A stretch of DNA of 12,366 bases from assembly GCA_964035545.1 (NCBI GenBank), contig CAXIUT010000247.1, forward strand, positions 1 through 12,366, written 5' to 3'. The translations under genes were made by a program, and so were the position numbers. How positions within the stretch are numbered: the first letter of the stretch is position 1; every line of letters begins with the position of its first letter. The notes below the pieces were generated by a model. That model saw nothing but the letters and a program-made list of their open reading frames with translations, had not been told where the DNA came from and made no database searches. Positions 1,782 through 12,366 of this stretch are shown here, one piece after another. The DNA is from Bugula neritina (taxonomy: Eukaryota; Animalia; Bryozoa).

Positions 1782-2705
1782 TCAATATTCCCTACTTGCA
1801 TATTTTGACTTATCTAGTGATTAAAAGTAAGGATGATTCAATGCCTCTTCTGGTGTTATTCTATTCAATGGATCATAATTTAACATTTGCTTCAATAAAT
1901 CGATTCCTTCAGCTGATATTTTACTACATTGGGAATCTAGTTTATTTTCAGTCCATTTAGGAAAAGTTGCCTTGAAGTCTTTGAGATTTACAACTGAAGG
2001 CCAAGTAGTTGGAGTTGGAGTTCCTAATATTTTGAATATTTTGAAAAGTTGATCTATTTCTGAATCTCCACAAAACAAACATCTTTTATGAGCCATCTCA
2101 TAGAAAATACATCCAATCGACCAAGTATCTACAGTTGGATAGTATTTTTCCATTCCCAATAAAATTTATGGAGCTCGATACCAGAGAGTAATAATTTAGT
2201 GAGTATACTCTCTCAAAGGGTAAGTATAGACTCGTGCCAATCCAAAATCAGCTAATTTGATATTCAGAGCCTCTTTGTTTACAAGTATGTTCTGAGGTTT
2301 GAGATCGCGATGAACAATTCTGTTGGCATGACAGTACTAGATTGACAAAAGTAGTTGGTAAATGACAGCTTTTACTTGTTCTTAGTTCATAATGGTCCCT
2401 TAGAGGTACTTTTTGAGATCACAGTCGACATACTCAAAGATAAGATTGAGTTTGTTTTCAGCTGATACGACTTATTTGAGGTCTACAATGTTAGGATGAC
2501 TGAGTTTTTTAAGGAGAGATATCTAGCGAACAGCAGTAGATGGAATTCCTTAATCTTAGTGGTCAAGTCTGATCTTTTTGACTGCCACTATGTCGTTAGT
2601 AATTTTATCTCTAGCCTTATAAACCACTCCATAAGTCCCTTAACCTATTTTGCTGATTCTTTGGTAGCGTTAGACTTCACTTCCACCTGAACTATCAATG
2701 ATCAT
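1782..2705 (-). CDS. CDK1: Cyclin-dependent kinase, CDK1/cdc2-like (PSTAVRE variant), 307 aa, intronless
   Basis: KIG[TAA][17 protein letters not shown], [TAA]D[TAA]GIPSTAVR[TAG][23 protein letters not shown][TAA]IITLWYRAP[TAA][23 protein letters not shown]. Length 924 nt, ATG 2705 to TGA 1784-1782, with 12 in-frame TAR codons. Confidence 0.96.
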
Positions 2706-2898: not shown

Positions 2899-3930
2899 TC
2901 ATCTTATCATAACTTTTTTTTAAACAATTGATTAAGCAGAATCAGCAACAGAATCTTTTTGTTACCATGAATAGGTATTTTTAGCTTGATATAAATTATG
3001 CATATTTTTACTAAAAGTAAAATCTTTTGGTAATTTATCATTCTGATAGCTTCTTTTCACATTTTATTAAAAAACACTAGACTTATTTCTCACCTCAGGA
3101 GATATATATTTAGACACAAAAACTTGAGAGGAATCAACCATAGATATACTTTTAAAACTTTATGACTTGTATGTATTGATCTTACTCCAATAGATATCCA
3201 TAATCTCTCTAAACTCTTTCAACTAAATACTGCCATTGATTTCTTTTATATTCTCACAGACATCTGACCTTAATAGTTCAAACTATTAGTAATACTGACT
3301 GATTTTACTTTCTTCTTCTCTAATTTTTAACAACTGTTTTTAAATGATATTTTCATGCTATTGTATCTATCTATCATACTTTTTATTTATCTGACATATA
3401 ATTTCCCGCCTCTATTATTCGATATCTTATCTAATTTTAACAAAATTGTTTTATATATGGTACTTTTCTCTGTTAAACACTCCAAATTTATCATTTAAAG
3501 TAGTCAAAATATCCTCACATACTTTCACATATTCTTGAGCCTATGTCAACATTTTTGAACCAACATCATCTTTTTTGACTAAAATTACTTTCCTTCCTTT
3601 ATGATTCAAATCAAAAGCACATTCTTCACAGTAGTAAAAAGGAGATTTGTCAAATTATAGCATATACTTTCCCATCTTCTCCCGATGGTTTATACATTTA
3701 GTAGACACATAACTATTCTTAGTTTAGAAAGAAGGTCGAGTAAAAGTCTTCTTTTGTGATGATTTATCAAATTGTACAGGACGATGACTATTCCGAGGAG
3801 AAAGACTAGGAGATCTCACAATCTATTTCTCTAGTTTAGGCTTACTGTAAAAATGATTGGTTATATTGAGAAGAGGATTTCGTTTCATTTTTGGAGATGG
3901 CTGAGGTTTAAGAAGTTTAATGCCTTTCAT
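2899..3930 (-). CDS. Hypothetical protein, 343 aa, with N-terminal D-box-like motif, degenerate B-box-like Cys/His cluster and coiled coil
   Basis: TGA-free frame from ATG 3930 to TGA 2901-2899, with a backup TGA three codons later. It contains RNPLLNITN (aa17-25), C79xxH82...C101xxC104...H110 (CINH...YYCEECAFDLNHKGRKV), then a charged helical region. Confidence 0.8.
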
Positions 3931-3974: not shown

Positions 3975-3980
3975 AAAAAA
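3975..3980 (-). terminator. RNA polymerase III terminator (T6) of the tRNA gene
   Basis: A run of six T on the minus strand immediately follows the tRNA discriminator base. Confidence 0.8.
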
Positions 3981-4052
3981 TATCCTGACAGGGAATCGAA
4001 CCCTGATTAATGGTTTTAGAGACCACTGTTCTAGCCGTTGAACTACCAAGAT
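3981..4052 (-). tRNA. tRNA with CUA anticodon (UAG-decoding), probably tRNA-Glu(CUA)
   Basis: 72-nt cloverleaf on the minus strand: acceptor ATCTTGG/TCAGGAT plus A73; D-arm GTTC-AACGGCTA-GAAC; anticodon arm GTGGT-CT(CTA)AA-ACCAT with the anticodon at 4019-4017; 4-nt variable loop TAAT; T-arm CAGGG-TTCGATT-CCCTG. A and B boxes are intact and there is no intron. The amino-acid identity is inferred. Confidence 0.95.
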
Positions 4053-4377
4053 TTATATTTATATCTGTTTTTAGGAATCAAAATACCACCCCTTTTTCCT
4101 TATACAAATATTTCTAAGTAAATAAGTTTAAAGTATTCTTTAAATGGTTCAATAATCTTATTACAATAATTCTCCAAAATAAAAGAAGAAGAAAATCAAA
4201 TAATTATAAACAGATAAAGTAAATATTATTTATTATTCTTGTAAAATTGATAACTACAAAAATGAAAGATATTTTTTAAAATTCTTTTTATATTATTTCA
4301 TACACTGAAGCTGATAAATGGTGTTTTAATAACAACATTAATAATTTAAAATATTTTATTAATAATCGAATTTACTC

Positions 4378-7057
4378 ATGCGTTTGTCGAACAGCCGTTT
4401 GAGCCACGAAGAACAAGTTAAGGTAGTAGTTCGTCTAAAACCCTAACAGACCTAAAATCCAAAAAATAAATGTGTCTACCTCTCTTAACAATAAAATCAT
4501 CTTGTTGTATAAACAGATCTCAAAAAATAAATATTCGTCTTCGATCACGTAGCCCATCAATTCTCCTCTCAACAAGATATCTACGAAATGATAGGAAAAG
4601 AAGCAGTCACCGCCAGTCTCGAAGTACCTCTCTCGTGATCCAGGGATATAACTGTTGTCTCTTTGCCTACGGACAAACTGGAGCAGGGAAAAGCTACTCC
4701 ATCATGGGAGATATTGTAGAATTACAAATCGATCCCAGTTGTAAAAGCAGAGGTATTATCCCCAGATTGCTATAAGATCTGTTCAGTTCGATTTAGTAAT
4801 CGAAAACTAATTTTTCAGTTATCTGCTCGTACATAGAAATATACAATGAACAGATTTATGATTTGGTACTAATCGAATAATATAGCTTTCGTCTGATAAA
4901 AGAGTTCATCAGATAAGGTAAGATCACAGGAAAGGAGTTTTTGTTGAAGGGACCATAGAGATTAAATTGAATTCTTATCAATAGGCTATTTAGGTTCTTT
5001 TAGAAGGAGATAAAACAAGAAAAATAGCAACCACATCAATGAATAACTAAAGTTCACGCTCACATGTCATCTTCTCAATAGTCATTTAATCGTAAATTCG
5101 ATAAGGATAAGTATACAAAACAAAGAAATCAAAACTCAATATAATTGATTTAGCAGGCAGTTAAAGAGTCAAGTATACAAACGTTGAAGGATAGAGATTA
5201 AGATAAGGTTGTAATATCAATAAATCTTTACATGTGCTTGGAAATGTCATCAATTCTTTAGTTTAATCAACAAAAAAGAAAAAACATATTCCCTATAGAG
5301 ATTCTAAACTTACGTATTTTCTTAAAGATTCTCTTGGAGGTAACTCAATAACCAAGTTATTAGCTAACGTTCACTGCAAAAAAGAATATTATGGAGATAC
5401 TTTATCAACTCTTATGTTTGCTAAGAGAGCTAAAATATTGAAAATGAAGGTATAAGTCAATTAAAATTGTACATAAAATTATTAATCTTTGAGAAATCAA
5501 ATCAAAAAGTTGAGATCTGAGCTAGCTGAAGCTAAATATTTTAGATAAAGTTCAAAAACTTAAGGGACAAGTTTTTATGAACTTGAACCTCAAAATTTAT
5601 AAAGATATACTGAACGTTCAGTATAATCATTACCAAGTACAAGCATCGTCAAAGTTTTCTAATAAAACTAAATCCACTATAAAACACTCATTTAAATGTA
5701 CTAAGAACATATGAAAAATTGTGTCAATATAAATAAAAGAAGAAACAGCATAAATAGAATATAATAATGGAAAAATCTATAAAGAAAAAATATTGCCTTG
5801 ACTAATCTAGTCAAACAATTTCCTAGCTTTACCAGAATATACAAAGAAAATATATTATTGAAACAATAAAGAAATAAAATAGATTAATGTTCAAATTCAA
5901 CTTAAAAATATACCAATAAGAAAGGAAGTACTCAATATACAACCTTTATTTCAATAAAATAACCTTAACAAGAACAAAAATAAGTATCTTTGGAGTAAAT
6001 AATAAAAACATATTAAGATCTAATCGATAATATGAAGACTAAATTTACTTAGCAATTTGATATTCTTGAGAAATCTTATATTTAGTTAGAACAAGACTGC
6101 AACTTAAAAGATAAGAAGGTTAAATAACTTATAAAAAGACAAAATCTTCCTCCAGATATCTAATAATTACAAAATTAAAATTAGTATCTTCAACTAAATA
6201 TATTAAACCTTGAAAATTAGATAAAATAATTATAATAAAATATCAATAAGTTAAATCTCTAAAAAAGTAAAAAACTATTTCATAAAAAAACACACTAAAA
6301 ATAAAGTTTTTATCAAGAATAAGATGATGATCTTGTAAACTATCTATTATAAAAACTTTCATAAATAAAGAAATAAGCATAAGAGGAAGAAAAGATAGCA
6401 AATACTTAAAAATAAAACATGTAAAGTATAATATCTTAACTAAATGCTCACATAGTATCACTTTCTAATTAAAATAATAAATTAAAATCAAAAAATCAAA
6501 GAAGTTTTAGCCAAAGAAAAGAAAAATAACCATAAAAATACCTAGATTAGATCTTTCTTTCAGATAGTAAAAATTTTAGACATAAAAAAATATTTAAAAG
6601 CTAATAACCCATCAACCATTCTGATATCTAATTCAATAACGCACAGTCCAACTTAATCGCCACCTTAAAAATGGAACTCAAAATGAAACAAAAATAGACT
6701 AATAGTCTCAAATAGTAGGTATAAAAATTTGATTTATAAAATAAAAAAGTTGAAGAATAGTTTGGAAAAAATATAAATAATATCATCAAAGAATATAGAT
6801 AAATATATCAAAAACAATTTTCACCACCTCAAATAAAAACAACAAAAAGCATCAGTCGATATAAATAAGAATATTGTCAAAGCATAAAACCTTAAAATAA
6901 AAAATACACCTAAAGATATAACAATAAAAAGTCATCAATCGACAGCAGAGATATCAAAGATAAATAAACTCCTAAAAGCAAAAAGAAAGAAGAATTAAAT
7001 CAAAATGATATTTATAACTATAGTAGTAGTAAAGGCAAGTTTTTTACAACCCGATGA
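4378..7057 (+). CDS. N-terminal-motor kinesin, KIF15/kinesin-12-like, 879 aa; exons 4378-4623, 4644-4865, 4886-7057
   Basis: [34 protein letters not shown] (P-loop), [29 protein letters not shown][TAA][45 protein letters not shown], then a long coiled-coil tail with no TGA until 7055-7057. Spliced length is 2640 nt. The subfamily call rests on IREDxxKGVFV and ANVH and is tentative. Confidence 0.93.
4624..4643 (+). other. 20-nt spliceosomal intron (kinesin intron 1)
   Basis: GTACCTCTCTCGTGATCCAG; removal gives the conserved ...SLE|GYN. Confidence 0.93.
4866..4885 (+). other. 20-nt spliceosomal intron (kinesin intron 2)
   Basis: GTACTAATCGAATAATATAG; removal gives the conserved IYDL|L and restores the motor-domain frame. 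Confidence 0.93.
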
Positions 7058-12210: not shown

Positions 12211-12366
12211 GGGGTTGGGGTTGGGGTTGGGGTTGGGGTTGGGGTTGGGGTTGGGGTTGGGGTTGGGGTTGGGGTTGGGGTTGGGGTTGGGGTTGGGGTT
12301 GGGGGGGTTGGGGTTGGGGTTGGGGTTGGGGTTGGGGTTGGGGTTGGGGTTGGGGTTGGGGTTGGG
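12211..12366. repeat. Right telomere, (GGGGTT)n
   Basis: Tandem GGGGTT from 12211 to the end, the reverse complement of the left-end repeat. Confidence 0.98.

Follow-up and report, generated by a model that had tools for sequence, protein, structure and literature searches.

A tRNA gene with anticodon CUA on a ciliate minichromosome with the peritrich code: a likely glutamate-delivering reader of UAG, most likely derived from a UAA reader

Background

What does a tRNA with the anticodon CUA read when it lies among genes that are full of in-frame TAA and TAG, which amino acid does it deliver, and from which kind of gene did it arise? These questions are raised by a 72-nt tRNA gene on a contig of 12,366 nt (C256; CAXIUT010000247.1) that is filed in an assembly of the bryozoan Bugula neritina (GCA_964035545.1). 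The contig was analysed at its full length and is referred to below as the window. An initial annotation, made from the letters of the sequence, had proposed that the gene is a remodelled tRNA-Glu(CUA) dedicated to a reassignment of UAG to glutamate. In this study, we report the structure of the gene, the genetic code of its neighbours, the suppressor tRNA family to which it belongs, and a comparison of its locus with orthologous loci in metagenome contigs. The results point to a gene that was most likely a reader of UAA before its anticodon changed, and that has since diverged at about three times the rate of its relatives.

Methods

The whole window was searched for tRNA genes using ARAGORN. 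The candidate was compared with the Rfam model RF00005 (gathering score 29) and its minimum-free-energy fold was computed with ViennaRNA. Signals for RNA polymerase III were judged by reading the sequence, not with a promoter model; the consensus used for the B box is established knowledge.

Relatives were collected by scanning metagenome contigs with the pattern CTYTAAA followed by 11 free bases and GGGTTCGATTCCC. Because this pattern fixes 20 positions in every metagenome match, a ranking by raw identity, in which phage-like CUA tRNAs come out on top (81%, versus 75-78% for the family described below), was rejected as evidence. The ORFs of the window were compared with the metagenome loci by tblastn. 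For reading the genetic code, the CDK-family kinase of the window was aligned, with X at each TAA or TAG, to 24 full-length homologues that had been found via a stop-free piece of the gene. In the pairing test, 17-19 random substitutions were placed on the sequence of a relative in 100,000 trials. The occurrence of the contig in public sequencing runs was recorded at the level of contigs; the runs are DNA-like and none is recorded as RNA.

Results

The tRNA gene and its signals

ARAGORN found one tRNA in the window, at positions 3981-4052 of the minus strand, with the anticodon cta at position 34 (positions 34-36 at 4017-4019, reading TAG on the plus strand). The gene has neither an intron nor an encoded CCA. 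It matched RF00005 end to end with 62.2 bits (E 8e-12), and its minimum-free-energy fold was the cloverleaf. All 21 pairs are standard and none is broken, and the 13 universal bases are all in place (U8, A14, G18, G19, A21, U33, G53-T54-T55-C56, A58 and C61). Direct reading gave an acceptor end with A1-U72, U2-A71 and the discriminator A73, a fully Watson-Crick D-stem (GUUC/GAAC) closing the 8-nt D-loop AACGGCUA, a 5-bp anticodon stem with the loop CUCUAAA (A36-A37-A38), a variable loop of 4 nt and the T arm CAGGG-UUCGAUU-CCCUG. The gene is thus real and intact, and the complete 72-nt cloverleaf of the initial annotation holds, as do the structural details given there.

The B box GGTTCGATTCC (3992-4002, minus strand) agrees perfectly with the consensus of the polymerase III internal promoter. 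The A-box region TAGTTCAACGG (4035-4045, minus strand) matches its consensus approximately, so the earlier description of both boxes as intact stands in full for the B box and only approximately for the A box. Six T follow A73 directly (3975-3980, minus strand; AAAAAA on the plus strand), as had been described; they form a likely polymerase III terminator, and the tRNAs of relatives in other contigs likewise end in T runs. By reading, then, the gene has the B box, the approximate A box, the T6 run and the absence of CCA expected of a eukaryotic polymerase III type-2 gene.

The label 'Pyl' that ARAGORN attached to the gene arises because its anticodon is CUA. A body of the Pyl type has a short D-loop, a variable loop of 3 nt and a long anticodon stem, and tRNA-Pyl is ruled out by the 8-nt D-loop, the 4-nt variable loop and the 5-bp anticodon stem. 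The run A36-A37-A38 had been called odd. It is common to the whole suppressor family described below and is the textbook motif recognised by Mod5/TRIT1 for i6A37 in tRNAs that read codons starting with U, and is therefore to be expected here; an i6A37 modification of the window tRNA would fit it.

The host chromosome

The window is an entire contig of a 216-Mb assembly in 321 contigs. Telomere repeats of the C4A2 type fill its left end (1-74) and G4T2 repeats its right end (12,211-12,366), which identifies it as a complete ciliate macronuclear minichromosome. The same telomeres were found on many small contigs of the assembly, and the large contigs have GC-richer, metazoan-type tRNA genes. Public runs under three organism labels and from three studies contain the contig, and next to none of it is present in other runs labelled with the species of the assembly. 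This distribution suggests that the ciliate was carried along with animal samples, and the contig looks like that of an epibiont or contaminant in an animal assembly, which thus contains many ciliate minichromosomes as contamination. In an independent run (X3, record 11) the contig is identical across the tRNA gene. Run X1 holds, beside an identical contig, a second one over the spacer between the tRNA and the kinesin gene (4064-4318) with 20 differences and 7 gaps, which could represent another allele of the spacer or a paralogous copy.

Other small contigs of the assembly were also of note. Contig C10 (21,272 bp; loci L041, L045 and L042) starts with C4A2/G4T2 tracts and has more of them inside, near 9.7, 11.0 and 19.6 kb; C11, C14 and C15 are built alike. 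The tracts in C10 may mark minichromosomes joined end to end or alternative sites of telomere addition. On another small contig, at least 11 tRNA genes (Met, Asn, His, Ser, Phe, Lys, Pro, Ser, Glu, Met and Tyr) are densely packed (C214:41188-45349; loci L002 and L013), and this array is organelle-like or bacterial-like.

The genetic code of the neighbouring genes

When TGA is taken as the only stop, the window encodes a CDK-family kinase, a kinesin and other proteins, and the genes are full of in-frame TAA and TAG. The kinase gene (1782-2705, minus strand) served for reading the code. It has TAG at the Glu of the PSTAIRE motif, where 20 of 22 homologues have E, and TAA at the Glu of the motifs GEGTYG, THE and APE, where E is found in 15 of 20, 20 of 24 and 22 of 24 homologues, respectively. 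The kinesin gene (4266-7054, plus strand), which is divergent from the tRNA gene and syntenic with loci L129 and L175, has many in-frame TAA and TAG codons. In an alignment of three kinesin orthologues, TAA stood opposite E 21 times, opposite TAA 16 times and opposite TAG 8 times; TAG stood opposite TAA 8 times, opposite E 6 times and opposite TAG 4 times. TAA, TAG and GAR thus interchange freely among the three. TAG is also a frequent codon, exceeding GAG in the ORFs of the window (49 versus 34), in which TAA was counted 155 times and GAA 89 times.

On these alignments, the host code is one in which TAA and TAG both specify Glu and TGA is the sole stop, that is, the peritrich code (table 30). 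The earlier statement that the neighbours of the tRNA gene have TAG where Glu is invariant was borne out by the kinase and kinesin alignments, which place both TAA and TAG at Glu sites.

Within the kinesin gene the reading frame moves between two overlapping TGA-free frames at 4862-4967, where the sequence probably contains a short intron. About 50 nt downstream of the T6 run of the tRNA gene, and on the same (minus) strand, starts an ORF (2902-3930) whose product has a zinc-finger motif resembling a B-box.

A family of UUA and CUA suppressor tRNAs

The exact 17-nt T arm of the window tRNA was found in only two contigs of the 216-Mb assembly, the window and C10. The second gene (C10:16787-16858; L032:1496-1567) also has the anticodon CUA, is 80% identical to the window tRNA by BLAST, starts with UCC, ends with GGA-G and scores 57.2 bits with Rfam. 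It has an A4-A69 mismatch, where most of its relatives have U4-A69, and metagenome locus L188 carries the identical sequence, mismatch included.

The metagenome scan returned 120 loci. Many lie in GC-rich bacterial contigs or belong to phage-like tRNA arrays, and about 27 low-GC contigs hold one coherent tRNA family with anticodon CUA or UUA and with U1-A72 or A1-U72. The members share the T arm, a D arm of the form GUUC-AAYGGYNA-GRAC, the loop CUYUAAA and a 4-nt variable loop NAAY; the body is 72 nt long, with C2-G71, C3-G70, no base 47, a D-loop of the GGUUAGGA type and, in many members, a UCC start. Of the cells in the paired columns, 98.7% are paired, and ten pairs have changed on both sides, a level of covariation that none of 500 shuffles reached.

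The window tRNA carries the family marks (alignment A2). It scores 85.3 bits with the family covariance model, in whose training set it is included, and the other tRNAs of the assembly score at most 61 bits. On the 52 positions outside the search pattern it is 63-69% identical to the UUA genes of the family, and its Rfam score lies inside the family range (52.8-65.5 bits) and above that of the C10 copy. By its alignment and scores, the window tRNA is a member of this family of Glu/Asp-shaped UUA/CUA suppressor tRNAs. Its pair A1-U72, which had been singled out as odd, is present in 9 of 15 family members; U2-A71 is found in the window tRNA alone.

The anticodon arm of the family, GGACU-YUA-AAUCC, resembles that of Gln-type suppressors (for example L109), the rest of the body being Glu/Asp-shaped, and the resemblance may reflect convergence for reading UAR or recombination. 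Phage-like packed tRNA arrays with CUA suppressors were seen at L086, L096, L099, L113, L117, L147 and L154. The 19-nt D arm of the window tRNA is present exactly in L086, probably by convergence.

The amino acid and the partner tRNA

Codon use in the genes makes it likely that the window tRNA is charged with Glu. UAR in the surrounding genes corresponds to Glu and not to Asp, and a single change turns the Glu anticodon YUC into YUA. The tRNA body is less specific. Against the tRNAs of the animal host, the family model scored 61 bits for Lys, 60 for Asp and 56 for Glu, and identities were similar across isotypes. A phylogeny had been proposed as a check; in a maximum-likelihood tree of 27 tRNAs, 14 of 24 branches were open and the window tRNA grouped weakly with one Gln-like and two phage-like suppressors, which gives no isotype placement. 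The usual end of a eukaryotic tRNA-Glu (U1-A72, C2-G71) is replaced by A1-U72 and U2-A71. The marks of Gln-type UAR suppressors, G1-G2 and U73, are absent as well, the window tRNA having A1, U2 and A73, just as the initial annotation had pointed out. Its term 'remodelled tRNA-Glu' is accordingly plausible from the family body and the hosts in which UAR is Glu, but neither identity nor the family model nor the tree tells Glu apart from Asp, Lys or Gln-type suppressors.

Since the anticodon CUA reads UAG only, a partner with anticodon UUA is needed, and one had been predicted. Genes for tRNA(UUA) on the family body exist in related organisms, two of them at the syntenic locus. In the assembly, whose ciliate part is partial, a search for a tRNA(UUA) by BLAST with both CUA genes, by T-arm and anticodon patterns with ARAGORN, and by the family model found none; the prediction is thus supported by the relatives and not by the partial assembly. 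Neither was a canonical ciliate tRNA-Glu found in the partial assembly, where the patterns and the family model gave host genes or chance matches.

Synteny and the change of anticodon

A tblastn comparison identified an orthologue of the kinesin gene in metagenome contigs L129 and L175, with 56-57% identity in the motor domain and, in L129, with the tail aligning too. TAA and TAG stand for Glu in both contigs. Each also has a tRNA(UUA) with A1-U72 at a distance of 0.7-0.9 kb upstream of the kinesin gene and in divergent orientation, the arrangement seen in the window. The UUA gene most similar to the window tRNA is that of L169, a contig which carries a homologue of another window gene. At A1, at C16 and at the last base of the variable loop (U), the window tRNA agrees with these UUA genes and not with the CUA genes. 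The shared locus and the shared bases are most simply read as showing that the window tRNA corresponds by position to an orthologous UAA reader and most likely acquired its C34 by a change from U.

Rate and pattern of divergence

With UAR read as E, the kinesin motor of the window is 65% and 67% identical to those of L129 and L175, which are 71% identical to each other, so that the three species are nearly equidistant. The tRNAs of L129 and L175 agree at 66 of 72 positions, and the window tRNA agrees with either at 53-54 of 72; its rate of change is thus about threefold higher than that of its relatives. Ten positions are unique to the window tRNA, compared with 0-2 in each of the 14 relatives. 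In linear numbering these are 2 and 70 (pair 2-71), 31 and 39 (a pair), 27, 23, 9, 19, 44 and 72 (the discriminator). The unusual traits of the gene, namely U2-A71, A73, the switched 31-39 pair, the fast evolution and the probable switch from UUA to CUA at a conserved locus, had been noticed in part before.

The stem changes all preserve pairing. Random substitutions broke about 7 pairs on average and the window tRNA has broken none (P about 2-7e-5). Together with an Rfam score like that of the relatives, this argues for fast divergence under selection on the cloverleaf and against a dead gene.

Discussion

We consider it fairly probable that the window tRNA is a functional polymerase III product that reads only UAG in a ciliate with the peritrich code, likely carries Glu, and descends from a UAA reader by fast, compensated divergence. 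A UAA reader of the tRNA(UUA) type at the kinesin locus would have become a reader of UAG alone when U34 changed to C; fast change with compensating substitutions in the stems would have followed, and the tRNA would now decode UAG beside UAA-reading tRNA(UUA) genes and deliver glutamate. We infer that the gene is transcribed, that its product is charged by GluRS, and that the anticodon switch ran in this direction.

The same observations can be read differently. The ten substitutions, which fall where 14 relatives vary little or not at all, could be those of a redundant paralogue in drift that may be transcribed but matters little; UAG would then be read mainly by the conserved C10-type tRNA(CUA), and through wobble by tRNA(UUA). 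The same assembly does hold the second CUA gene, and the C10 type occurs in many metagenomes, while the exact sequence of the window tRNA occurs only in the three runs with the contig. However, drift would hardly have left all 21 pairs intact by compensation, given the probability of this under random change (P about 3e-5), together with the universal bases, the B box, the T6 run and an Rfam score as high as that of the relatives, in a host where TAG is a frequent codon; this reading is possible but rather unlikely. A stronger form of the functional reading, in which the acceptor end and the anticodon stem are being remodelled under selection as the UAA reader becomes a UAG reader, is unlikely. 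If true, the remodelling could mean altered recognition by the synthetase or by a modification enzyme, and possibly a second meaning of UAG. Pair 2-71 and base 73 are often important for recognition by synthetases, and the unique changes at both could have altered the identity of the tRNA (U2-A71, A73), so that it accepts an amino acid other than Glu and UAG is partly ambiguous. Sequence similarity gives no firm tie to Glu, and some TAG sites of the window kinesin stand opposite Q, D or S in the orthologues. These variable sites are, though, poorly conserved positions, and TAG at the invariant PSTAIRE Glu and its exchanges with TAA and GAR in orthologues speak for Glu. Pair 1-72 also varies between U-A and A-U within the family, from which the synthetase seems tolerant of changes at the acceptor end. 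We regard a changed identity as very unlikely.

Two further origins concern the ancestry of the gene. The weak grouping with the Gln-like L109 in the tree, and the U8-A9 and the D-loop AACGGC that the two tRNAs have in common, would fit a gene left over or derived from the Gln-type UAR suppressors of other oligohymenophoreans (Tetrahymena, Paramecium) and kept after the peritrich switch to Glu. This is highly improbable for a tRNA that lacks G1-G2 and U73, that occupies the locus where L129 and L175 have a UUA gene of the family, and that is, on the unbiased positions, 58% identical to L109 versus 63-69% to the family's UUA genes. That the gene lies outside ciliate translation altogether, as an assembly artefact or as a phage or bacterial tRNA, can be given almost no credence: the top matches by raw identity are phage-like tRNA arrays, yet the gene is flanked on both sides by recoded ciliate genes, its contig runs from telomere to telomere and is identical across the gene in an independent run, and it has a eukaryotic T-run terminator and no encoded CCA.

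If the window tRNA is the compensated descendant of a UAA reader, it offers a datable example of how a tRNA set is adjusted after a code reassignment, with a switch of a stop-codon anticodon at a conserved locus followed by threefold faster, fully compensated divergence. These are the new elements here. The divergence touches positions often read by synthetases, and the locus gives a natural set of Glu-type UUA and CUA suppressors for testing the tolerance of ciliate GluRS.

The code itself and its tRNAs have precedents. The peritrich nuclear code (NCBI table 30) goes back to Sanchez-Silva et al. 2003 (Curr Biol 13:442), with Heaphy et al. 2016 as a further reference, and the 2003 study reportedly described Glu-like cognate tRNA genes. 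No sequence of a peritrich suppressor tRNA was found in the literature searched, the 2003 report being outside that scope. The window agrees with this code in that TAA and TAG occupy sites of invariant Glu and only TGA serves as a stop, and its C4A2 telomeres fit the class Oligohymenophorea. UAR as Glu in peritrichs is published, and is cited as such in PMC11687900 and PMC10553269. As this code and Glu-shaped stop readers with CUA or UUA anticodons have been published, the main claim is not new, and the novelty that the initial annotation attached to UAR as Glu and to a Glu-like tRNA(CUA), both already described, is overrated.

In Oligohymenophorea sp. PL0344, ten CUA tRNA genes are 69-93% identical to the organism's own tRNA-Glu and UAG is Glu, whereas UAA is Lys and the UUA tRNAs are Lys-like (McGowan et al. 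2023, PMC10553269). The window differs in that UAA is also Glu and that the UUA genes of its relatives use the body of the CUA tRNA, a comparison that rests on published identity tables without tRNA sequences. In Blastocrithidia, UAR is decoded as Glu by duplicates of tRNA-Glu genes in which A has replaced C36 (PMC12153298); this is an unrelated trypanosomatid in which UAA also terminates, and the published probe has a different anticodon arm. In Tetrahymena, as cited in PMC10553269, tRNA-Gln with anticodon UUA reads UAA and UAG and that with CUA reads UAG only. The division of labour proposed for the window is alike, but the Tetrahymena tRNAs are of the Gln type with G1-G2 and U73, in contrast to the window tRNA, which has A1-U2 and A73 and belongs to an organism that decodes UAR as Glu. 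Shifts between isoacceptors are a general phenomenon, in which one base change at position 34 of a duplicated or orthologous gene alters the synonymous codon that is read. The shift suggested for the window tRNA is distinct from these in that it would have taken place between two reassigned stop codons and have been followed by a burst of compensated change.
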